Shown: positions 3,100 through 44,024 of the stretch, piece by piece | Numbering within the stretch: the first letter of the stretch is position 1 | How the letters are laid out: each line of letters begins with the position of its first letter | Made by a program: the position numbers and the translations under genes | Notes under the pieces: generated by a model | Seen by the model: the letters and a program-made list of their open reading frames with translations, nothing else | Database searches by the model: none | What the model was told of the DNA's origin: nothing | Virus record (IMG/VR): IMGVR_UViG_3300014494_000005 | Location: 186,001-250,000 of that record | DNA length: 64,000 nucleotides | Direction: 5' to 3' (one strand)

Positions 3100-4974
3100 A
3101 TGAAAAATATTATAAAAAATATAATTATTGATAATAATACTAATAATATTATATCACGAAGAGCAACAGAATCATTTTTTAAAAAAAATTATAATGAAAT
3201 TTTTAATCAAATAAACAATCAATTCAATTCAACCATATCATTTAATGCAAAATTATATTTATTGTTTTATGATATTCATGAAATACCTTTATGTATTATT
3301 TGTGGAAAACCAGTTAGATTTAAAAAATTTAGTGAAGGATTTTCAAAATATTGTTCAATGCAATGTATTGGAAAAGACAATAATATTAAAATCAAAAGAG
3401 AAAAAACATCAATAAAAAACTTTGGATTTAAATATACATTACTTTCTGAAGAAAAAAAAGAACAAATAAAACAAACCAATTTAGAAAGATATGGTATTGA
3501 ACATCCGCAACAATTAGATAGTGTTAAAGAAAAAACAAAACAAACTAATTTAAAAAAATATGGTGTTGAACATCATCTTAAATTAAAATCTCAACAAGAG
3601 AAACAAAAACAAACCAATTTGAAACGATATAATGTTGAAAATCCAATGCAGAATATTCAAATTAATAATAAATCAAAACAAACAAAAAATAAAAGATATG
3701 GTAATGAATATTATAATAATAAGGAAAAACAAAAACAAACATGTTTAACTAAATATGGTGTTGATTGTACATTAAAAGATAATAATATTAAAGAAAAAAC
3801 CAAACAAACAAATTTAAAAAAATTTGGTGTCAAAATTCCATCACAAAATTCAATAATAAAAAATAAAATTATTCTTAGTGTTAAAAAGACATTACGCATA
3901 AAAAATAAAAAACTATGGGCAAAAAATTTAAACATAAATGAAAATAATGTTGAATATACTATATATGATGAACTTATTATATCTAATTTATGTAAAAAAC
4001 ATAATAATTTTACAATAAATATTTCATTATTAAAAAATCGTTTAAGAGAAAAAATAGAAAATGTCTGTACTGAATGTAACCCAATTTCTGAAAATGTTTC
4101 AATTAAAGAAAACGAAATTAAAGATTTTATTAATAATGAAATAAACATAAAATCAGAAAAAATACGAATTGATAATAAAGAAATTGATATTTATTTACCA
4201 GACAATAAATTAGGTATTGAGTTCAATGGATTATATTGGCATTCAGAATTATATAAAGATAAGAATTATCACCTTAACAAAACTAATTTATGTGAACAAC
4301 AAGGCATACAACTGCTTCACATATTTGAAGATGAGTGGGTTAATAAAAAGGAAATTGTTAAATCAATAATTAAATCTAAGTTAGGTATTATTGAGAATAA
4401 AATATTTGCAAGAAAAACAATACTTAAAGAAATTAATAATATAACATGTAATAACTTCTTAAATAATAATCATATACAAGGTAATATTAATAGTAAAATT
4501 AGAATAGGTTTGTTTTATAATAATGATTTGGTATTGGTTATGACTTTTGGTAAAAAACGTATTGCTATGGGTAATAAAATTAATATTGAAGGAGAGTATG
4601 AGATGCATAGATTTTGCAATAAACTTAATACAAGTGTTATTGGTGGGGCAAGTAAATTGTTTAGCTATTTTACTAAGACATACGCTCCAAAATCAATTTT
4701 AACGTTTGCAGATAGAAGGTATAGTCAAGGTGGTTTATATAAGCAATTGGGATTTACTTTCATTGGCAATACTAAGCCAAATTATTGGTATTATAATAAT
4801 AAAATTAAAGAAATTAAAAGATATTATAGATATTCATTTAGAAAAAATATTCTTATGAAACAAGGTTTTGATAAAAATAAAACAGAATTTGAAATAATGA
4901 ATGATAATGGATATTTAAAAATTTATGATTGTGGTAACATGAAATTTGAAAAAACTTTTGATATTAATATTTAA
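3100..4974 (+). CDS. Putative homing endonuclease: TNLxKYGV repeats, Vsr-like nuclease and C-terminal GNAT/Mom-like domain
   Basis: Several QTNLxxYGV repeats; [16 protein letters not shown] Vsr-like motif; [29 protein letters not shown]-terminus. Confidence 0.7.
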
Positions 4975-18804: not shown

Positions 18805-18957
18805 ATGAGATACGATAAAGATAAAAATGATGTTCTTAATATTAGATTAAGTATTGGTTTAAAAGAACAATATTTAAAATTTGTAAAAGATAATGGATAT
18901 TGTCTATCCAAAAGAATAAGAATTTTGCTTGAAAATGATATGAAAAATGGAAAGTGA
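18805..18957 (+). CDS. Small ribbon-helix-helix-like DNA-binding protein
   Basis: LNIRLSIGLKEQYLKFVKDNGYCLSKRIRILLE; start set at ATG 18805, downstream of GTATTTATATTTG at 18769-18781. Confidence 0.5.
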   Translation: MRYDKDKNDVLNIRLSIGLKEQYLKFVKDNGYCLSKRIRILLENDMKNGK

Positions 18958-20095
18958 AGAATTAAAAGTATATTTAGAAACCAATAATAAATCTGGATAT
19001 AAAACAAGAGAAATACACATAAAAAATAATTTTCCTGACCTATACAATAAAATTATTGAATTCTCTAATTCAAATAGTTGGCATGAATTATTATATAATT
19101 ACATTAATAATTTATTTGAAAACCCTAAATGTATATCTTGTAACAAAATATTACATTTAAAAAAATATAATATTGGATATCACAAATATTGTTCAATTAA
19201 TTGTTTAAATAAATCAGAACAACATAAAGATAAAATAAAACAAACTTGTTTAAATACATTTGGTGTAGATAATCCATCAAAATCAAACGAAATTAAGAAA
19301 AAAATAAAAAATAAATTATATAAAAATGGAAAATGGTATAATCAAACGGATGAATGCAAAAATAAAACAAAACAAACTAATTTAAAAAAATATGGTGTTG
19401 ACCATTTTTCAAAAACAAAAGAATTTCATAATAAAAGAATTCAAACTAATATTAGAAGATATGGTATGGATTCATATAATAAAACAGAAAAATCAAAAAA
19501 TGAAACAAAAAAAAGAAATTTGGAAAAGTATAATACTGAATGGTTTTTATCAACAAATGAATTTAAAAAAAAATCAAAAAAAACTTGTTTAATTAAATAT
19601 GGTGTTGACCATCACACAAAAACTGAAGAATATAAAAATAAAATGAAAATTTATTATTTGAAAAAATATGGTGTTGAATATGCTACACAAAATAAAAGGG
19701 TTTCCGAAAAAATTGCAGCAACCATGATTGAGAGATATGGCGAATTATGGTTAAAACATGCCCCAAAATATAATCCTAATTCAATAATATATTTAGATTT
19801 ATTATCAGAAAAATTAGGGATAGAAATTCAACATGCATTAAATGGTGGTGAAAAGAAATTTATAAGATATTGGGTTGATGGTTTTATTGCGAAATATAAT
19901 ATATGTATTGAATGGGATGAAAAACATCATAATGCTAAACGACAAAAAGAACGTGATTTAATTAAAGAAAATTATCTTAAGGAAATGCATAATTGTCATA
20001 TTATAAGAATAAATGAAAAAGAATTTTTAAAAAATATTGAAGAAAATATAAAACTAATCTCTAATCAAATTAATTCTATAATTTCTTCAACATAA
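18947..20095 (+). CDS. Putative homing endonuclease (TNLxKYGV repeats plus DUF559/Vsr-like nuclease)
   Basis: Repeats as in 3100-4974; YWVDGF...CIEWDEKHH C-terminus. Confidence 0.7.
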   Translation: MESEELKVYLETNNKSGYKTREIHIKNNFPDLYNKIIEFSNSNSWHELLYNYINNLFENPKCISCNKILHLKKYNIGYHKYCSINCLNKSEQHKDKIKQTCLNTFGVDNPSKSNEIKKKIKNKLYKNGKWYNQTDECKNKTKQTNLKKYGVDHFSKTKEFHNKRIQTNIRRYGMDSYNKTEKSKNETKKRNLEKYNTEWFLSTNEFKKKSKKTCLIKYGVDHHTKTEEYKNKMKIYYLKKYGVEYATQNKRVSEKIAATMIERYGELWLKHAPKYNPNSIIYLDLLSEKLGIEIQHALNGGEKKFIRYWVDGFIAKYNICIEWDEKHHNAKRQKERDLIKENYLKEMHNCHIIRINEKEFLKNIEENIKLISNQINSIISST

Positions 20096-28151: not shown

Positions 28152-30080
28152 TTATAATAAGAAATTATTAATTGCTTTTATTATTTTACCTTCTTCTTCC
28201 TTAATAAGAATACCATTTTTGTTTATATAATTCTCACCAAAACTTTTATCACCACGTTTTTCTGGAAATAAATATGCACCCGGAGTACTTGGAGTTGAAA
28301 CTAAATCGAAACCAATTAATTCAAAATCTCCTTGAACTAAATTTTCACCATTTATTTCTTTAAGTGTTCCAACACCACGACTTGAAATTCCTAATTTAAT
28401 TTTGTTTTGCAAATACAAAACAATTTTATCACCAATTACAGAAACAACACCATATCTAATATATCCGGGACTAACAATTATTTTTAATTGACCATATAAC
28501 ACATTTTCTTGTTCACCAGTACCCCACCACATTTTAGTAATCATATGAGAAATATTTTGAAGTGATATGATACTGGAATTACCTGTCCAATGTGATTTAC
28601 CATTTACTTTAATTAAAAAATTTCCATTTTTTACTCTTACACAAGCAATATTATCATCGAAATTTATTTCACTTATTTTTATACTTCTTTTATCTAAATA
28701 AATATGTTTTGTTTTTGAAATATTTAAATTATATTGTAAATGACTATTTTCTAATTTAATTAATCTTTTTTTATTTGCGTCTTCAGTAATATACTCAACA
28801 GTACCATCAGAAAGAATCATTTCCCTTTTTAATATTTTATGGTCAATAATTTCTCTATCTTTTGGTTGATAAGTAGTAATATTACCACAGCCACCAATCT
28901 TAATTAAAACTTCATGTAAATCTTCAATTAATTGTTTTGATATCGAAAAAACTGATTCTTTACGTATTTTATTGATAGTTTTATTTTTTATTAATCTTCC
29001 ATCACCTAATTCAAACCATCTAAACAATATTTTCAATAAATCGGAAGATGCTTGTTTTAATTCAATAGGAATATATTTATTAAATGAATCACCTAAAACA
29101 TATAAATAATCATATAATCTAGCATCATTTATGTGATATTGACATTTACCATCATTATGTTCATCCTTCCAATATTTAAAAGGTAATTTTTTTAATAAAT
29201 TTTCGATTATTATTTTCTTTTCAATATTCTTTTGTGTTATAACAACATCGTATCCCTTTAATTTATATTGATTTGATTTAGTTCCACCACAATGACCTTC
29301 AGCTAAATATATTCCTATAAATGCAAACCAATCTTCAGATTTAATATTTATTGATTTTGTGTATTTTTCGATTAAGTCATGTTTATAGTTAAAACTTAAA
29401 GTATTTTTATTTACACCGTTTAAAGTAAAATATTCCAAATATTGACCATTCCATTTAGCAGTTTTTAATATTTTATATTTACCTGACGATAAAATATTAT
29501 TTTTATTATCATAAATATCTTTAGCATAATAATATTCTTGTTTACGTTTAGAATCTTCTAATAAAAATCTATGATTTGCAGTAACCGTTAAATCAATATT
29601 AGTTCCCAAAAATTTATACATTTTGCCTTCATATGGCATATATATTTTTTTATCGATTTTTTGAATCTCAATTTGATTAGTATCTATATTAAGTGTTAAA
29701 ATTTCTTCATTGTCTGAAATATCTTTAAACCATTTCCAACCACTCTTTGTAAGTATTTGAGAATTAGATGCTTGCACACAATCGGGATGGTCTGCTTCTG
29801 ATACTGCACTATTTGTATTAACTAATTCCTGATATATTTTAACTTGTGGTATTAAAACATCTTTGGGATAAATTCGACCATTTTTGTTTTTAACACCCCA
29901 TTTTTGTAATATACAATTAACTAAAACTGGTTCATTAGGTTTAAGTTCAAAATTTTCATTAAGAATATCTTTATTAATTTCAGAACTAATATATCCTGCG
30001 TCATGTTCTATAAGAATCCCAAATCCTGTTTGACCTGCTTGTATTATTTTACTTTCGTTTAAAGGAAATATCATACTCAT
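28152..30080 (-). CDS. Prohead protease (gp21-like) with intein
   Basis: LQKWGVKNKNGRIYP, EADHP, GISSRGVG and FDLVSTPSTPGAY motifs. Confidence 0.93.
   Translation of the reverse strand: MSMIFPLNESKIIQAGQTGFGILIEHDAGYISSEINKDILNENFELKPNEPVLVNCILQKWGVKNKNGRIYPKDVLIPQVKIYQELVNTNSAVSEADHPDCVQASNSQILTKSGWKWFKDISDNEEILTLNIDTNQIEIQKIDKKIYMPYEGKMYKFLGTNIDLTVTANHRFLLEDSKRKQEYYYAKDIYDNKNNILSSGKYKILKTAKWNGQYLEYFTLNGVNKNTLSFNYKHDLIEKYTKSINIKSEDWFAFIGIYLAEGHCGGTKSNQYKLKGYDVVITQKNIEKKIIIENLLKKLPFKYWKDEHNDGKCQYHINDARLYDYLYVLGDSFNKYIPIELKQASSDLLKILFRWFELGDGRLIKNKTINKIRKESVFSISKQLIEDLHEVLIKIGGCGNITTYQPKDREIIDHKILKREMILSDGTVEYITEDANKKRLIKLENSHLQYNLNISKTKHIYLDKRSIKISEINFDDNIACVRVKNGNFLIKVNGKSHWTGNSSIISLQNISHMITKMWWGTGEQENVLYGQLKIIVSPGYIRYGVVSVIGDKIVLYLQNKIKLGISSRGVGTLKEINGENLVQGDFELIGFDLVSTPSTPGAYLFPEKRGDKSFGENYINKNGILIKEEEGKIIKAINNFLL
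28578..29780 (-). mobile_element. Intein (401 aa) with LAGLIDADG endonuclease
   Basis: Starts CVQASNSQILT after ADHPD; block B VTANHRF; IGIYLAEGH and FELGDG motifs; ends HWTGN followed by Ser. Confidence 0.92.
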
Positions 30081-37127: not shown

Positions 37128-39137
37128 TTATTCGGGTAAATCAATGTTCTCAATATCCATAATTTCAGTATCTTGTATTTCAATAATTTTTTGTCCAGTG
37201 TTTATACTTTCACGATTTTCCAATAAATTATTTATTTCATTAATCATATCTAATGCTTTGTTATTCAAAGAATCATTAATTTTATTGTTTTCTTGAATAA
37301 TTTGTGTATGTTCTGATTCTTTTTTAATTTCTGTTTCTTTACTACTACCATATACTAATTTTTCAATATGTTTATTATATTCTTCTTCACTTAATTTAGG
37401 TTCTTTATTTTCCATCATTGCTTCAGCACCACCCCCCCCAGCAGGAGCACCACCAATAGGTGGAGCACCAGCACCTGCGCCACCACCAGTAGGTAATGCT
37501 CCACCTGTTGGAGCAGGAGCACCACCAATAGGTGGAGCACCAGCTTCACCACCAGTAGTACCAGACATTGACATTCCTTCTTCTGGTGAACCAAAACGTT
37601 TATCAATATCAGTAAATAAACCAGATTTTTTAATTGTAACTGGAGAATCTTGAAGTTCTTGCATAACAACCTTTTCCATTTTTTGTTGTTTCAAATCTTC
37701 AACAATTTCTCTATCAGTCATATTGAAAAGTACTCGTTTAGCGGTAGTATGTGACATAGCTGCAATACCACCTTCAGCACGAGTTAATTCTGTATATGTT
37801 TGTGCTTTATCACGCATTAATTCAGATTTCAATAATTCTTGTTGAGTACTTGGATTTGTAAGTGTAAGAGTGAAACTACTTAAATCTTCACCAGTATATC
37901 CTAATAAATATAAATGAATCATTGCCATTTTATTCAATTCTTGAATTATGGCTTGTTGAATACGATTTATTTTTTTAGAAAATCTAATATCATATTGTGC
38001 CATATTCTTACCAGCACCAGCAGAATCTTGAAATGATAAAAAGGGTTTTGGAATACCTAAACCTATAAATAAATTATCTCTTAAATATTCTATATCCTGT
38101 ATAGCATCTAAATTACTTGCACCGGGAAGTGTATCAATACCAGTTTCAGTATTTGCATTTCTAACAGGAATAAAATAATCTTCATCATTACCAAGTATAT
38201 TAAAACGATAATCAATTTGACCATCATTCGGATTTACTTGTGCAGTTTTTTTGAATTTAGTTGCAACTTTATAAATATATTCTTCAATATCATCTTCATC
38301 AATATTTCCAACATCTATTTTAAATACCTTCTTTTCACCAGCACGGATAATACGATATGTAAGCATAGCATCTTCAGCCATTACAAGTTGTCTGAACACT
38401 CTACGTATTTTATTTAAAACCGAACTACCATATGGTAAATATTTATCATCACCAAGTAATCTGAAATGAGCTATTTCAAAAACATTAAATTCATCACCAG
38501 TCATTCTTTCTTTAAATTTAACCAGTGGTTTACCATTTTGAATTCTTTCAAACCTTTCAATTTCATAATTTACCAATTGCTTTACATGTGTAATACCTTT
38601 TTTACGTTCGCCATAAAGTAATACAAAATTATCTCCATATTTACATGTATTTCTTACCCAAAAAGGTAAATTAACATTAACATTTACTATATCATAGAAA
38701 AATTCTTCCAACAACATTTTTATTCTTTCTTTGTTAGAATATATATTTAACATTTTACCATTTAAACCAATAGTAGTTGCTTCTTCCATAAATAAATCCA
38801 ATGCACTACTAATAATTGGATAATATTCCATACCCTCATAATCAATATATGCTGGTAGTCTTGCTGCTTCATATTGAAGTGCTTTTTGAAAACCCCTATC
38901 AGTTGTTCTAAAAAATTTATTTTGAAGTTCTCTTTTTTGTTCCAACTCCAAACCCTTTTTTTGAATTTCTTCAGGACTATTACCTTTAATTATTATTTTT
39001 GCTCTTTCAGGTGGTGGTGTAGATGCTTGTAGCATTACACTTGTAGATTGATTATCTTGAAAGCCAAAACCATCAAGATTCATCATTTTATTAAGTTCTT
39101 GATATATTGTTCCTTTATTTTTTGTTGGTTCAGCCAT
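37128..39137 (-). CDS. Portal protein (T4 gp20-like)
   Basis: EDAMLTYRIIRA.E..VFKIDVGN, EDYFIPVR, I.TLPGA.NL..I.DIEY and LGIPK motifs; Gly/Pro/Ala-rich C-terminal insert. Confidence 0.95.
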   Translation of the reverse strand: MAEPTKNKGTIYQELNKMMNLDGFGFQDNQSTSVMLQASTPPPERAKIIIKGNSPEEIQKKGLELEQKRELQNKFFRTTDRGFQKALQYEAARLPAYIDYEGMEYYPIISSALDLFMEEATTIGLNGKMLNIYSNKERIKMLLEEFFYDIVNVNVNLPFWVRNTCKYGDNFVLLYGERKKGITHVKQLVNYEIERFERIQNGKPLVKFKERMTGDEFNVFEIAHFRLLGDDKYLPYGSSVLNKIRRVFRQLVMAEDAMLTYRIIRAGEKKVFKIDVGNIDEDDIEEYIYKVATKFKKTAQVNPNDGQIDYRFNILGNDEDYFIPVRNANTETGIDTLPGASNLDAIQDIEYLRDNLFIGLGIPKPFLSFQDSAGAGKNMAQYDIRFSKKINRIQQAIIQELNKMAMIHLYLLGYTGEDLSSFTLTLTNPSTQQELLKSELMRDKAQTYTELTRAEGGIAAMSHTTAKRVLFNMTDREIVEDLKQQKMEKVVMQELQDSPVTIKKSGLFTDIDKRFGSPEEGMSMSGTTGGEAGAPPIGGAPAPTGGALPTGGGAGAGAPPIGGAPAGGGGAEAMMENKEPKLSEEEYNKHIEKLVYGSSKETEIKKESEHTQIIQENNKINDSLNNKALDMINEINNLLENRESINTGQKIIEIQDTEIMDIENIDLPE

Positions 39138-39208
39138 TTTTATAATTTTTTATATTTTTTTATAAATACTTCGATTTTTTTAAAAAGTCATTTAAATATA
39201 AATACATA

Positions 39209-40516
39209 CTATATTTTCTTTTTATCTTTAATACCATCAAATAACCATGCATTTGCTCCATATGGATTTAATGGTGATACACTATTAGGTGAAATCATTG
39301 GTCTGTTTTTTATATCAATTTTTCTTCCCATTTCATTTATATCATTATTGGTTATTATGGCATTAAGCATATGTTCAGTTATTCCTTTACTTTGTTTATA
39401 TCTCGCCATATCAAAATTAAGAACATACAAACCAATTGATAATCCCATAATTGAATCATCATGAAATGTACGTTTATGGTCTGCAACCCTATTACCAGCA
39501 ACAGTTACAAATGTTTTTAATTCTTCTAATAATCTAATTGACCTAATAATAACATCTTCTAAATGAATAGCTCTTTGTAATTCCAAAATAACTGATGCAC
39601 GATTATTACCTATAAAAAATCCAGGAATTAAATCAACATTAATTACTGTACCATCTGGCATTATTTTTTGACCTTTTTTTATATATCCTTGTAATCTATC
39701 TCTACTTGGTTTATGTGTTACTTCAGCATAATGAACATGTTCATTACCATAACCAAATTCTAATAATTTTTCAACACTTTGTACACCATAACCACCAGTA
39801 ATATCAACAACACAATATGCATTATTATATTTTCTACCATATTGATATGCTATTTCTGCAAGCATTTGTGGTGTAACTTTACCATAATATTCAGCAACTT
39901 GTTCAACTTTATGCCTTTTTATTTTAATTTTTTTTGTTTTACCACCTTTTTCTATTATTTTTTCTTCAATAGTTTCTATGGTTTTAAGTATATTTATTGT
40001 TGAATTATCTTCTCCATGACCCGGAGAGGCATCTAATGCCATAATATATTCTTCACCTGCTTCAGGGTCTTTCCAAATCCACATATTACCATCAACATAT
40101 TCTTGACGAATTGGAATTAGTTTTTCATTTTCTTCAATTCGTTTTAAATATTCTTTAGCAATAAAATTATCACCAGACCCCAAAAAAGAACAATTATGAT
40201 TTAAGATTCCATTTGCAAAATATTCACACCCTTCGCTATCAACAATATCATAAAATTCACAATCATTTATCGGTTCAACAGATTTAACATAAAAATCTCC
40301 TTCTGTTGTTGTTAAATATGCAACATTTGGTATTAATGATTTGGCATACATATCAACATTATTTGTAATGAATATATGGTCTTCACTAACAATAATTGAC
40401 ATATCATTTTCTAAAGTTATTTTTAATCCATTTTTTTTGTTCGATTTTTCCACTCCCAAAAAATCCACAAAATTTCCTGAATTATTTAATATTTCATATT
40501 CAGTATTAATTAACAT
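39209..40516 (-). CDS. terL: Terminase large subunit C-terminal fragment preceded by a C-intein (108 aa)
   Basis: IntC with SEDH block B, YDIV block F and ILNHN end; then CSFLGSG, ALDASPG and HDDSIMG nuclease motifs. Confidence 0.9.
   Translation of the reverse strand: MLINTEYEILNNSGNFVDFLGVEKSNKKNGLKITLENDMSIIVSEDHIFITNNVDMYAKSLIPNVAYLTTTEGDFYVKSVEPINDCEFYDIVDSEGCEYFANGILNHNCSFLGSGDNFIAKEYLKRIEENEKLIPIRQEYVDGNMWIWKDPEAGEEYIMALDASPGHGEDNSTINILKTIETIEEKIIEKGGKTKKIKIKRHKVEQVAEYYGKVTPQMLAEIAYQYGRKYNNAYCVVDITGGYGVQSVEKLLEFGYGNEHVHYAEVTHKPSRDRLQGYIKKGQKIMPDGTVINVDLIPGFFIGNNRASVILELQRAIHLEDVIIRSIRLLEELKTFVTVAGNRVADHKRTFHDDSIMGLSIGLYVLNFDMARYKQSKGITEHMLNAIITNNDINEMGRKIDIKNRPMISPNSVSPLNPYGANAWLFDGIKDKKKI
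40193..40516 (-). mobile_element. Split intein C-fragment (108 aa)
   Basis: MLINTEYEIL...FANGILNHN followed by Cys. Confidence 0.9.
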
Positions 40517-41670
40517 TGTAAAAATTTAACACATTTATTAATGATTTCATTATTTTTATTATTTCTATTATATTCTTCTGAAGTTACAAACATAATTTCA
40601 AATCCCATATCTTTCAATATGGAATATCTAATATCATCAATATCATTCGAATGCCAATAAGTACCGTTATATTCAATAACTTTATTGTTTTGTTTAAAAT
40701 CTAACATCATTACTGTTTTATCATAATTAAATTTTTCTGGTATTCTTAATACAAATTCTTTATTTAATTCGGTAAAATATATATTATTCTTATTATCTAT
40801 ATTATCATATATATTCCAAAACAATTCTTGAGAAATTTTACTATATCTATTTGCTTTTAATATTGATAATTTATTCATTTTAATATTTACATGTTCCTTA
40901 TATTTTATAATTCCTAATTCAGTACCAAATTTACGTTGAAACCATTCAATACTATTTGTTTTATTTATTTTAACATTTTCTTTTCGTTCATTATAATAAT
41001 AATTCCAATTATCACAATATGTTTTTTTAAACCAATTAATTGATGGATATTTGGGTTCACATTTTCCACAAATAATACTAAATTCACCCTTATTTATTCT
41101 CCAAAATTTTAATACATTATGCTTGTGACAATAAATATCAATATTATTAATTAATATATATAATCTCATTGATAATTTATTTAAATTTTTATTAAGTAAA
41201 TTCAAATGAGATGTATAGTATAATAAACTTAAATATAATTTTTTATCATCTCTTAATAATTTTCTATTTCCAGATTTTCCATAATAAATTTTATATTTAT
41301 TTTTTAATAAATTTATTGTTTCTATTTTAGAATACAATTCAACAATTTTCGATAATTCATCATTACATAAATCCCATTGTTTTTTTGCTGCATTTAAATT
41401 ATATTTCTTAAAATCGCATAATTTTGAGTCATAAATCATTAATTTGTTATCAATCTTAATTTTGTTAATGTCACCATTATATTTTTGTAAAAATAAAATT
41501 TTTGCTGGTAATTTTTTGTTTGACGGATATATTTGAATTTCCTTAGTATATTCGTTAATATATTTTAATAGATTTGGAAACAGCTTATTAAAATGTGCAA
41601 CACCGCCCATAATACTAAAATTTTTTATATTTACATTATTTAAATTTTTAATTAATATTTCTTTTTTCAT
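40510..41670 (-). CDS. Vsr-like homing endonuclease between the split-intein halves
   Basis: SKISQELFW...LDFK...VIEYNGTYWH C-terminal nuclease; its stop overlaps the IntC start. Confidence 0.75.
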   Translation of the reverse strand: MKKEILIKNLNNVNIKNFSIMGGVAHFNKLFPNLLKYINEYTKEIQIYPSNKKLPAKILFLQKYNGDINKIKIDNKLMIYDSKLCDFKKYNLNAAKKQWDLCNDELSKIVELYSKIETINLLKNKYKIYYGKSGNRKLLRDDKKLYLSLLYYTSHLNLLNKNLNKLSMRLYILINNIDIYCHKHNVLKFWRINKGEFSIICGKCEPKYPSINWFKKTYCDNWNYYYNERKENVKINKTNSIEWFQRKFGTELGIIKYKEHVNIKMNKLSILKANRYSKISQELFWNIYDNIDNKNNIYFTELNKEFVLRIPEKFNYDKTVMMLDFKQNNKVIEYNGTYWHSNDIDDIRYSILKDMGFEIMFVTSEEYNRNNKNNEIINKCVKFLQC

Positions 41671-41681
41671 ATTATATTTTA

Positions 41682-42878
41682 TTATAAATACTCACAAGAA
41701 TTATTTTGTTCATTAAGTTTATCATAAAATTTAAAAATTTCTAATGTTTCAATAATACCAGTTTTTTTATTTTTAATTGTAATTAATGAATCTTTTCCAA
41801 CGCACATAAGTTCCTGCGCTATCTTACGCATATCACCATTGGCATTACGAATTTGTTCTTCAAACCAAGGACTACTTGCTTCCCAGCCATCGTCCATCAT
41901 TTTAATTCTCTGTTCCTTACTCCAATTTGTATCAATTATTTTATTTTCAGTGGTTTTACCTTTATTTTTTAGCCAAACCAATTCTTTATTATAACGAGGG
42001 TCATTATACCACCATAATTCAACCGCTTTAAAATTATTTTTTCCTTTTCTTGCAGTATTAAATGTTTGATAAAAAACAGCATCAAGACCAGAAGGTGTAC
42101 TTACCATAATAGCATTACCACCAGTTTGTAATGTTGGCTGTGCTGAAGTCCAGAATTTATCACCCTTTTCTGCCCATGCTGTTTCATCCCAAAACAATAA
42201 AGTTGGTGTCATACCACGTAATGTTTTAGATGCAAATGCTCCTAATTTTGAATCATTATCATAATATTTCAATTTCTGTGTATCTTTTAAATTTTTTTCT
42301 GTATCTCTACCAGTTTTTGGTCTAAGCCATACAGGACAATTTTCAATAAAATCAACAACATCACTCATTAATTCATCACGTGCGGTTTCAAGTTTATCTG
42401 CAACAATAGCTACTTGTCTATTACGATTAAACATTACATACCAAGCAATATATGCACAAGTTGTTGTTGAAATACCTGCTTGACGATATTTATTAGCAAT
42501 AACAAAACGGTTTTCTAAATATGATTGAATTAATTCTTTTTGAAATTCAAATAATTTGAAAGGAACAATAAGACCAGCCTTACCTTGAGTTTGGTCAAAA
42601 ATTGTCAAATAAGTTTCAATAAAATAAATTGGATTTGAAGCACAACGAATAATTTCATCTTCTTGTTCATGAAGAGTTAATTCACTTGCTTTTTTTATTA
42701 GACCTGATTTTGCAACAATAATGGGTTCAATATTTCCAGATTTTTTTCGAAGTTCTTTTGCTAATTTTCTTTGTTCTTCTTTTTCTATTTCCTTTTGAGC
42801 ATCAAATGGAATGACTGGAATATGGTCAGGAAATTGTTCTTCTTCTTTATCTTTTAATTTGTCAATATCTTCAGACAT
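41682..42878 (-). CDS. terL: Terminase large subunit N-terminal ATPase fragment ending in an N-intein (40 aa)
   Basis: KYRQAGIST Walker A variant, LFWDETAW Walker B, STPSG; ...IAQELM then CVGKDSLITI...CEYL stop. Confidence 0.9.
   Translation of the reverse strand: MSEDIDKLKDKEEEQFPDHIPVIPFDAQKEIEKEEQRKLAKELRKKSGNIEPIIVAKSGLIKKASELTLHEQEDEIIRCASNPIYFIETYLTIFDQTQGKAGLIVPFKLFEFQKELIQSYLENRFVIANKYRQAGISTTTCAYIAWYVMFNRNRQVAIVADKLETARDELMSDVVDFIENCPVWLRPKTGRDTEKNLKDTQKLKYYDNDSKLGAFASKTLRGMTPTLLFWDETAWAEKGDKFWTSAQPTLQTGGNAIMVSTPSGLDAVFYQTFNTARKGKNNFKAVELWWYNDPRYNKELVWLKNKGKTTENKIIDTNWSKEQRIKMMDDGWEASSPWFEEQIRNANGDMRKIAQELMCVGKDSLITIKNKKTGIIETLEIFKFYDKLNEQNNSCEYL
41685..41804 (-). mobile_element. 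Split intein N-fragment (40 aa)
   Basis: Block A CVGKDSLITIK, then a stop after 40 residues. Confidence 0.85.
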
Positions 42879-43061
42879 TTATAAATATTTATAATAAATA
42901 CTATCCTTGATTAAAACCGCAAAGCTCGGTACATTCCTAAATGATGTATCGAACTTCGAAATCTTTTCTTCCTAATATGGTAAGATAGACAAAAAAACCA
43001 AAAACGCATAAATACGTTTTCTTAACTGTTTTACCTCATGGGTAATCAGATATTATAAATA

Positions 43062-43550
43062 CTATAATTTAATCGAAGAAGTTTCAACAAATTCATTATT
43101 TTTTAAAATAATTTTTCTGGCATTAAGTAAATCTTTGACTTTACTTAATGTCATACCATAATGAAATACTAATAATGGAAATTCTTCATTATCATCTTTT
43201 TCAAACATTTTTTCATAATCACCAAAATTACCATTTTCATCAGCTTGTTTTTCAATTTCATATGCTAAAGCATGTATTGTATGATAACCATGCATATATT
43301 CTCTATCAACTGCTTCATGTAGGCAAAATAAATCAAATGAACTGGTTTTTAAATTAAAAATTGCATTAATATATTCTTCTGTTGGTGGAGTTGCATTATC
43401 ACAAGCAGGACTTAAATCCCAACACCAACCTTCCATATCAATATTTGTTGGGTCTAATGAAAAGATAAATTCATATAGACCTTCACCCTTTGCATTATAA
43501 CCAATTTTTAAAATAAAAATTAGTTTTAATTTATTATCTTCGTAGTCCAT
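43062..43550 (-). CDS. Hypothetical acidic protein upstream of terL
   Basis: 162 aa; phage motif at 43564-43572. Confidence 0.6.
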   Translation of the reverse strand: MDYEDNKLKLIFILKIGYNAKGEGLYEFIFSLDPTNIDMEGWCWDLSPACDNATPPTEEYINAIFNLKTSSFDLFCLHEAVDREYMHGYHTIHALAYEIEKQADENGNFGDYEKMFEKDDNEEFPLLVFHYGMTLSKVKDLLNARKIILKNNEFVETSSIKL

Positions 43551-43601
43551 AATGTAATTTTATTATAAATACTTTTAATAAAAAAAGCCACTGGCGTGGC
43601 T

Positions 43602-44024
43602 TTAATTTTTATTGAATTCAAAACCTGTTTGTTCCTTTATTTCGCATAATATTATTGTTAGACACATATTATAATCATTTAATCTTTTTCTTATTTTATT
43701 TTTTAAATATAAATATAATATTTGAAATATAATTGATATTAAAAAAATAATTATTGATATTAGTGGACTTTTTGATAATAAAAATATTGGAAGGATGGCA
43801 AATATATAGCTTAAATTTTTTAATAATATTTTCCAACTAAAAATAACGTTAAGTAAATCGTCAAAATATTGAATAAATATTCTCCTATATTCAAACCAAT
43901 CACAATCTGAATTATCTTCTTTACTGCCTTGAACTTTTTTAAATATTTCAAGTTCGTGTTTCTTTGAACCACCACCAATAAATGTTCTAAAAAATTTATA
44001 TTTTAAAAATGTTCTATCTATCAT
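43602..44024 (-). CDS. Two-TM membrane protein
   Basis: Two hydrophobic helices; own promoter motif at 44044-44073. Confidence 0.55.
   Translation of the reverse strand: MIDRTFLKYKFFRTFIGGGSKKHELEIFKKVQGSKEDNSDCDWFEYRRIFIQYFDDLLNVIFSWKILLKNLSYIFAILPIFLLSKSPLISIIIFLISIIFQILYLYLKNKIRKRLNDYNMCLTIILCEIKEQTGFEFNKN

Follow-up and report, generated by a model that had tools for sequence, protein, structure and literature searches.

Fractured genes, and the Vsr-like endonuclease family associated with them, were defined by Dassa et al. in 2009 (PMC2677866). In the fractured loci described there, the two halves are separated by a free-standing endonuclease gene, Vsr-like or GIY-YIG, whose 3' end overlaps the start of the C-terminal intein fragment (IntC), by 6–69 bp in 15 loci. 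A hairpin or a conserved nucleotide motif upstream of the endonuclease open reading frame (ORF) is frequent, but not obligatory. One of these loci, the 'Terminase' locus from Lake Gatun, was described as 'fractured at an unusual point', with a C part of 122 residues that holds all motifs except N1 (PMC2677866). Here we analyze a locus of this kind in IMG/VR virus record IMGVR_UViG_3300014494_000005, a genome of 348,923 bp rated complete by CheckV. The stretch we studied, hereafter the window, comprises 64,000 nucleotides (nt), bases 186001–250000 of that record. A preliminary description of the window, made from the sequence alone, had proposed a fractured gene for the large terminase (TerL) at 39209–42878; we find all of its elements there, in three minus-strand ORFs.

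Short N-terminal intein fragments (IntN) paired with long IntC fragments have been described in TerL before. The naturally split AceL-TerL and GOS-TerL inteins have IntN/IntC lengths of 25/104 and 37/115 residues, respectively (Thiel 2014; Bachmann & Mootz 2015; PMC11766414), and the consensus Cat-TerL intein has 30/104 (Stevens 2018; PMC11766414). AceL and Cat use Cys1 and Cys+1 (PMC11766414). The prototype of the EDxHD (Vsr-like) homing endonucleases, I-Bth0305I, resides in a group I intron in recA (PMC3239194, PDB 3r3p). As the preliminary description acknowledged, both the layout and short-IntN TerL inteins were already known from metagenomes (PMC2677866, PMC11766414). Publications from 2009 to 2018 already covered this architecture, the endonuclease family and the atypically split TerL, and the locus in the window leaves current understanding unchanged.

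The locus resembles these systems closely. As in the Dassa terminase locus, a gp17-type TerL is encoded in two co-oriented ORFs with intein halves, and as in the fractured loci generally, a free-standing endonuclease gene stands between the halves with its 3' end overlapping the IntC start. Compared by description, the IntC of the window has 108 residues rather than 122, the overlap is 7 bp against 6–69 bp, no hairpin was detected upstream, and the host is a 349-kb peat and permafrost phage of 25% guanine-plus-cytosine (GC) content rather than part of a tropical lake metagenome. Like AceL-, GOS- and Cat-TerL as published, the window pair combines a short IntN carrying block A with a long IntC, using Cys1 and Cys+1 as AceL and Cat do. 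Unlike in those three, the last ~10 of the 40 IntN residues form a conserved tail (EQNNSCEYL), which in relatives is the linker to the endonuclease.

Similar loci are found in cultured phages. Vibrio phage Va1 (MK387337.2; QAU04494, QAU04493), whose proteins are annotated merely as 'putative terminase', has the same insertion point (...E/C...HN/CNFLGSS, slashes marking the intein borders), an IntN of 33 residues, an endonuclease of the same family (SKISQKLF, IEFQGNYWH) and an IntC about 41% identical to that of the window. In Va1 the endonuclease and IntC/TerL-C form one reading frame of 762 residues, whereas the endonuclease is a separate ORF in the window and is fused to IntN in relatives of the window. 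Aeromonas phage PX29 (gp17A/gp17B) and Providencia phage PSTRCR_127 also have a split TerL, with an IntN of 33–37 residues and an IntC of about 111; in PX29 the two proteins are annotated as N-intein and as GIY-YIG endonuclease plus C-intein. The endonuclease of both phages is GIY-YIG, not Vsr-like as in the window, and their insertion point, QEH/C-x-x-F, lies one residue upstream of that in the window relative to the F-x-G anchor.

We consider it very probable that the sole large-terminase gene (terL) of this phage is a fractured gene, interrupted by an element of a split HINT class 1 intein and a Vsr-like homing endonuclease gene that operates by trans-splicing and spreads by homing. On this reading, codons 358 and 359 of an otherwise ordinary 685-residue TerL are parted in frame by a selfish element of 1.6 kb, a class 1 intein broken after its first ~30–40 residues by the gene of an EDxHD-family homing endonuclease. 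The three ORFs share one orientation, are tightly packed and are probably transcribed together; translation of IntC/TerL-C probably proceeds by termination-reinitiation at ATGTTAA. The 40-residue IntN on TerL-N is predicted to dock into the 108-residue IntC on TerL-C and thereby complete the HINT fold, in which Cys1, the S-x-x-H of block B, the Asp of block F, the terminal His-Asn and Cys+1, to judge from their invariance, would perform canonical trans-splicing. The product would be a TerL of 685 residues with the junction QELM-CSFLGSG, the same as in intein-less relatives, and the expected peptide across it would be ...AQELM-CSFLGSGDNFIAK. During co-infection the endonuclease would cut the intein-less terL of related phages, and repair would copy the cassette in, as the patchy distribution on the extein tree suggests. 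The three-ORF layout of the window would be one of several interconvertible states. The positions of the features are listed in Table 1.

Table 1 Features of the fractured terL locus (window coordinates).
Feature	Coordinates	Strand	Remarks
TerL N-extein, 358 residues, ATPase part	41805..42878	-	ends ...RKIAQELM; Pfam Terminase_6N E 3.8e-8, over cut-off
IntN, 40 residues, block A only	41685..41804	-	starts with Cys1, ends ...EQNNSCEYL
Stop of TerL-N/IntN and spacer	41671..41684	-	TAA at 41682-41684, second in-frame TAA, 11 nt to endonuclease ATG
Free-standing homing endonuclease gene, 386 residues	40510..41670	-	Vsr-like 'EDxHD' domain at residues ~270-386
Overlap of endonuclease stop and IntC start, 7 nt ATGTTAA	40510..40516	-	TAA of endonuclease overlaps ATG of IntC
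IntC, 108 residues	40193..40516	-	blocks B (S44-E-D-H47), F (D90), G (H107-N108); ends ...ANGILNHN
TerL C-extein, 327 residues and stop, nuclease part	39209..40192	-	starts CSFLGSGDNF
Whole inserted element (IntN, endonuclease gene, IntC), 1,612 nt	40193..41804	-	missing from empty-site relatives

The three ORFs occupy 41682–42878 (398 residues), 40510–41670 (386 residues) and 39209–40516 (435 residues). The first continues from RKIAQELM into the IntN sequence CVGKDSLITIKNKKTGIIETLEIFKFYDKLNEQNNSCEYL; the N-extein ends at 41805, not 41802. Its Terminase_6N match is the single one in the entire genome, and terL is present in one copy only; because there is no second terL, packaging would depend on the joining of the halves. 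The C-extein has a weak Terminase_6C match, and the region of the junction aligns weakly to the segment QEHTAAFEGTSG of T4 gp17 (residues ~345–360, domain E = 0.6). IntN and the endonuclease gene are poorer in GC (17–18%; 18.4% for the endonuclease) than the exteins (28–31%). A sigma-70 promoter scan gave 50 sites against 42.7 expected and was uninformative; the sole terminator-like hairpin (43584–43603) lies upstream of the entire cluster. RNA folding upstream of the IntC ATG was no better than in shuffled sequences.

The insertion point could be placed exactly by means of relatives with an empty site. A search with the IntC/TerL-C ORF returned about 60 clusters of ~430-residue proteins that begin with the 108-residue segment, and about 60 clusters of TerLs of 681–708 residues without it, whose C-terminal parts are up to 93% identical. 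Intein-less homologues of 681–689 residues, some of 685, are colinear with both ORFs, as expected if the two are terminase halves, and they read through the junction as ...GDMRKIAQEL[LM]CSFLGSGDNFIA; the identity of intein-less relatives is 85–93%. The N-extein is 72–85% identical to the intein-less TerLs of 681–708 residues along its colinear length, and the C-extein is 90–93% identical to the C-terminal part of P0046 and P0047. In the DNA, the flanks of the empty allele L091 are 87% (N side) and 90% (C side) identical up to the exact junction. It reads ...GAACTTATG/TGCAATTTTTTGGGG... there, the flanks of the window matching up to the same point, and the empty site with its immediate flanks is GAACTTATG/TGCAATTTT. 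Since the flanks match the empty allele up to the junction, the window holds an insert of 1,612 nt. Removal of the element restores the uninterrupted host protein ...AQEL[LM]CSFLGSG... of the empty alleles, as is characteristic of a class 1 intein, and the restored junction QELM-CSFLGSG is exactly the one that had been predicted. Judged on these alignments, the split of terL is not a chance pattern.

The residues around this insert are those of an intein divided at an unusual place. In a phmmer search IntC matched the structure of the gp41-1 intein (6qaz) from residue 29 through to the last residue, 128 (E = 7.4e-7). Because this alignment begins at residue 29, blocks B, F and G lie on IntC and block A alone on IntN, an 'atypical' split as had been suggested from the sequence. 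Conservation was assessed among 57 IntC and 19 IntN cluster representatives, diverged to about 60% identity. H47, D90, H107, N108 and Cys+1 are each present in all 57, S44 in 55, and Cys1 (Cys359 of the TerL-N ORF) in 19 of 19; the IntN tail, EQNNS[SC].YL, is conserved as well. IntC has a length of exactly 108 residues in 50 of 59 split alleles. The locus thus possesses all of the class 1 residues: Cys1, S-x-x-H in block B, Asp in block F, the His-Asn end and a nucleophile at +1. Split TerLs of this kind are common, as indicated by the 282 matches to IntC (E ≤ 0.001) in a library of representatives at 50% identity. Among the best 147 of these, 92 have IntC at the protein N-terminus, followed in 47 by a TerL-like C-x-F-x-G motif.

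The protein encoded in the gap belongs to the Vsr-like 'EDxHD' family of I-Bth0305I. About 95 homologues of the 386-residue protein were found, the distant ones having PF04480/PF18741 matches and the JGI name of very-short-patch-repair endonucleases. A profile of 37 homologues matches the catalytic domain of I-Bth0305I (3r3p, E = 9.9e-6). The AlphaFold2 model (predicted local distance difference test score, pLDDT, 88.7) has 3r3p as its top Foldseek match (probability 1.00, template modelling score 0.56), with 1vsr also listed. E305, D324, E333, W339, H340 and D345 are invariant in the 37-sequence alignment, and all of these except W339 fit the composite catalytic motif (Glu, Asp, His, Asp) of the EDxHD family (PMC3239194); from the profile alignment we infer their one-to-one mapping onto I-Bth0305I. 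The profile, the fold and the invariant residues together justify the name 'Vsr-like endonuclease' given to it earlier. The profile was required: a PDB search with the single sequence yielded spurious matches only (Epx1, ACE2). A search of the phage genome with the endonuclease protein returned only the match to itself. Like I-Bth0305I, the protein is multidomain, with an N-terminal DNA-binding part and a C-terminal nuclease domain recognizable by profile and fold. Its N-terminal ~270 residues, which are helical and include a Cys-rich zinc ribbon (C181, C201), are unrelated in sequence to those of I-Bth0305I, and its gene sits inside an intein rather than a group I intron.

Comparison with relatives revealed that the arrangement in the window, including its 40-residue IntN, is one of several states of the locus, which goes beyond what a single sequence showed. 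At the one terL site we found five: empty, contiguous mini-intein, IntN-endonuclease fusion, free endonuclease (as in the window) and endonuclease remnant. In L005, L008, L011 and L012 the spacer is an open in-frame linker, and TerL-N, IntN and the endonuclease form a single ORF; the fused state also occurs in 13 protein clusters of 788–813 residues. A Met is conserved in the fused alleles where the free endonuclease ORF of the window begins. In the window and in L010, a stop follows directly after ...NNSCEYL, with differing indels downstream. The 7-nt overlap ATGTTAA, seen in the preliminary description as an overlap of the endonuclease stop with the IntC start, is shared by L005, L008, L010, L011 and L012. 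Across the endonuclease tree we count at least 4–5 switches between the fused and the free state. L007 has only a remnant of ~90 endonuclease residues, fused to IntN. Among proteins of up to 1,390 residues we found no contiguous allele in which the endonuclease is joined in frame at both of its ends.

To follow occupancy of the site, a tree was built of the C-exteins of 60 occupied and 60 empty alleles, the 120 best matches to a query that itself contains IntC. It has 22 state changes, of which well-supported branches require at least 7, and the C-extein of the window groups with those of the empty alleles P0046 and P0047. As occupied and empty alleles are interspersed on the tree, the element appears to be mobile, and the comparisons taken together point to one that is still actively moving and not to a frozen relic. 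One may ask whether the intein splices while the endonuclease is a decaying or domesticated passenger, so that the element is immobile here and inherited vertically with occasional precise loss. The remnant in L007 shows that decay occurs, contiguous mini-inteins lacking an endonuclease exist, and losses could partly explain the patchy distribution. We regard this as unlikely all the same. The endonuclease of the window is full length, retains all 19 invariant columns of the 37-member alignment and is modelled at the high pLDDT given above; precise loss of an intein at the DNA level is rare; and homing accounts better for the state changes among close alleles, at least 7 of which are well supported.

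We offer a broader idea tentatively, at somewhat less than even confidence. A lineage of phages of ~325–365 kb may keep every stage of intein fracture at one terL codon, the stages flipping repeatedly, and two unrelated endonucleases, Vsr-like (here and in Va1) and GIY-YIG (in PX29 and PSTRCR_127), may interrupt the HINT fold at one common loop. If so, endonucleases would have a second, recurrent entry point into inteins, namely the loop that follows the first strand-helix unit, and 'atypically' split inteins would in general have arisen there. Diverged short-IntN pairs would, moreover, be available from this lineage as a large natural panel.

The relatives carry many mobile elements in addition to the one discussed. 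L007 (3008–5950, 7374–11771) has a LAGLIDADG intein in TerL-N at ...IMVS/C and two inteins in its portal protein of 1,465 residues. L091 (5128–8058, 2351–2935) has a portal intein, and a GIY-YIG gene just upstream of its intein-less terL; P0046 has a GIY-YIG gene at that position too.

Do the two halves of TerL become one chain? We used complex prediction on IntC (residues 1–125) and TerL-N (345–398). The score was 0.62 and that of the best among 3 controls 0.19; the mark applied was one reached by 51 of 78 solved complexes and by 2 of 108 mismatched pairs; passing it may reflect resemblance to solved split-intein complexes and so denotes likeness, not proven binding. The three runs had at least 88% of contacts in common, with a partner pLDDT of at least 68. 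TerL-N residues 359–392 are predicted to touch IntC blocks B, F and G, with IntN 360–366 placed against residues 42–43 (B), 86–91 (F) and 99–103 (G). IntN and IntC are therefore predicted to dock. Contiguous mini-inteins of ~147 residues occur at the same site in the relatives P0230, P0231, P0232 and P0235. In P0230 (821 residues), a 147-residue mini-intein comprises IntN, a 10-residue linker and IntC in one chain. From these alleles it follows that IntN and IntC constitute one HINT domain, and, as far as sequence can tell, the contiguous forms must splice in cis. Origin of the P0230 allele by deletion of the endonuclease was considered, by comparing its linker DNA with the ATGTTAA overlap, and set aside, as the resemblance is too AT-rich to judge. 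A more distant TerL, P0233 (1,021 residues), has four HINT-like stretches, including a contiguous mini-intein at the homologous site (...EQNYG/C...YLNHN/CDFHGSS).

Docking as such would also suit a non-covalent complex of the TerL halves, with the intein fragments a mere dimerization module or splicing too slow to matter, on the model of the intein-less fractured NrdA of phage Aeh1. Fractured genes whose products assemble without inteins have been described (Dassa 2009, PMC2677866; PMC3045599). The break also falls, by the weak gp17 alignment, near the boundary of the ATPase and nuclease domains of T4 gp17, and separately folded domains are plausible. Docking alone, however, does not need an invariant Cys1, H47, D90, H107, N108 and Cys+1 across ~57 diverged representatives; the contiguous mini-inteins at the same site have to splice if TerL is not to carry an insert of 147 residues; and the characterized AceL-TerL and GOS-TerL inteins do splice (PMC11766414). 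We therefore think it very unlikely that the halves stay separate.

RNA-level splicing of the halves, the competing scenario raised in the preliminary description, was not borne out. An Rfam scan of 38500–43500 (E up to 1) found no RNA family, and four RNA libraries contained no splice joints, their contigs being colinear across both ORF boundaries. In RNA run X15, a 167-nt contig matches over only 33 nt (41856–41888, the conserved end of TerL-N) and then diverges; it is probably an allele of a related phage in the same sample. Four DNA runs each contain one contig identical over the whole 3.9-kb stretch, by which an assembly error is excluded. It is thus scarcely credible that the endonuclease resides in a group I or II intron and the interruption is removed from the RNA, that the assembly is at fault, or that terL is dead and the phage defective: Vsr-like endonucleases do also occur in group I introns, such as I-Bth0305I in recA, but no Rfam match or RNA joint was found, the intein blocks abut the exteins exactly, the four DNA runs agree, and the same layout recurs in at least 60 protein clusters and in the cultured phages Va1, PX29 and PSTRCR_127.

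Several points weigh against the trans-splicing and homing interpretation. Every functional step in it, splicing and cleavage alike, is deduced from sequence. Pfam Intein_splicing scores 18.3 bits on the intein (cut-off 35.8), and MTES_1575 scores 15 bits on the single endonuclease sequence (cut-off 38.2). No hairpin of the Dassa type was detected upstream of the endonuclease ORF (folding of 41650–41770, z = 0.5 relative to shuffled sequences). The C-extein tree has a bias from the selection of hits, and recombination around homing sites could blur it. The RNA-library contigs, finally, may include contaminating DNA.

What the locus adds is modest: alternative states at one site in a single lineage and a panel of diverged short-IntN pairs. 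Split inteins with a short IntN are sought as protein-ligation tools, and the window pair (40/108 residues, Cys1/Cys+1, native junction LM/CSF), together with dozens of relatives (60–84% identity), could enlarge the set of orthogonal pairs. Nature also provides here a clear case of a homing element in several states, and DNA packaging of an abundant jumbo phage of peat and permafrost appears to rely on post-translational ligation.

The phage itself is a 349-kb T4-like jumbo phage from peat and permafrost, with a GC content of ~25% and T4-like structural genes (Gp23 capsid, Gp20 portal, S77 prohead protease, tail sheath). Identical sequence is present in peat, permafrost and bioreactor metagenomes, and 14 runs contain all sampled words of the window sequence. 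In the comparison of 39100–43000, runs X1, X5, X9 and X10, labelled permafrost, peat or bioreactor, with four study codes and dated 2018–2025, each gave one contig of exactly 16,765 nt that does not differ from the window at any base; a single site resampled, a highly clonal phage and library carry-over are all possible sources of this identity. Apparent joints in the DNA runs at 39427/40560 and 40581/41285 proved to be 21-nt low-complexity matches to other contigs and not variants.

Directly upstream of terL, at 43062–43550 on the minus strand, lies an ORF that is conserved in all relatives, at 158–165 residues, with no Pfam match; by position it is a candidate for the small terminase subunit. 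Two further ORFs of the window, 3100–4974 and 18947–20095 on the plus strand, match DUF7487 (PF24308, E = 1e-26 and 3e-45) and, below threshold in both, the Vsr-like restriction endonuclease family MTES_1575 at the C-terminus. They resemble free-standing homing-endonuclease-like genes and are not obviously within fractured genes. The prohead core protease gene (28152–30080, minus strand; Pfam Peptidase_S77) has a contiguous intein of 401 residues at about 28578–29780, with the borders ...SEADHPD/CVQASN...HWTGN/SSIISL and a LAGLIDADG-like middle part; Pfam Intein_splicing is under its cut-off there. With it, the phage has a second head-morphogenesis gene that carries an intein.

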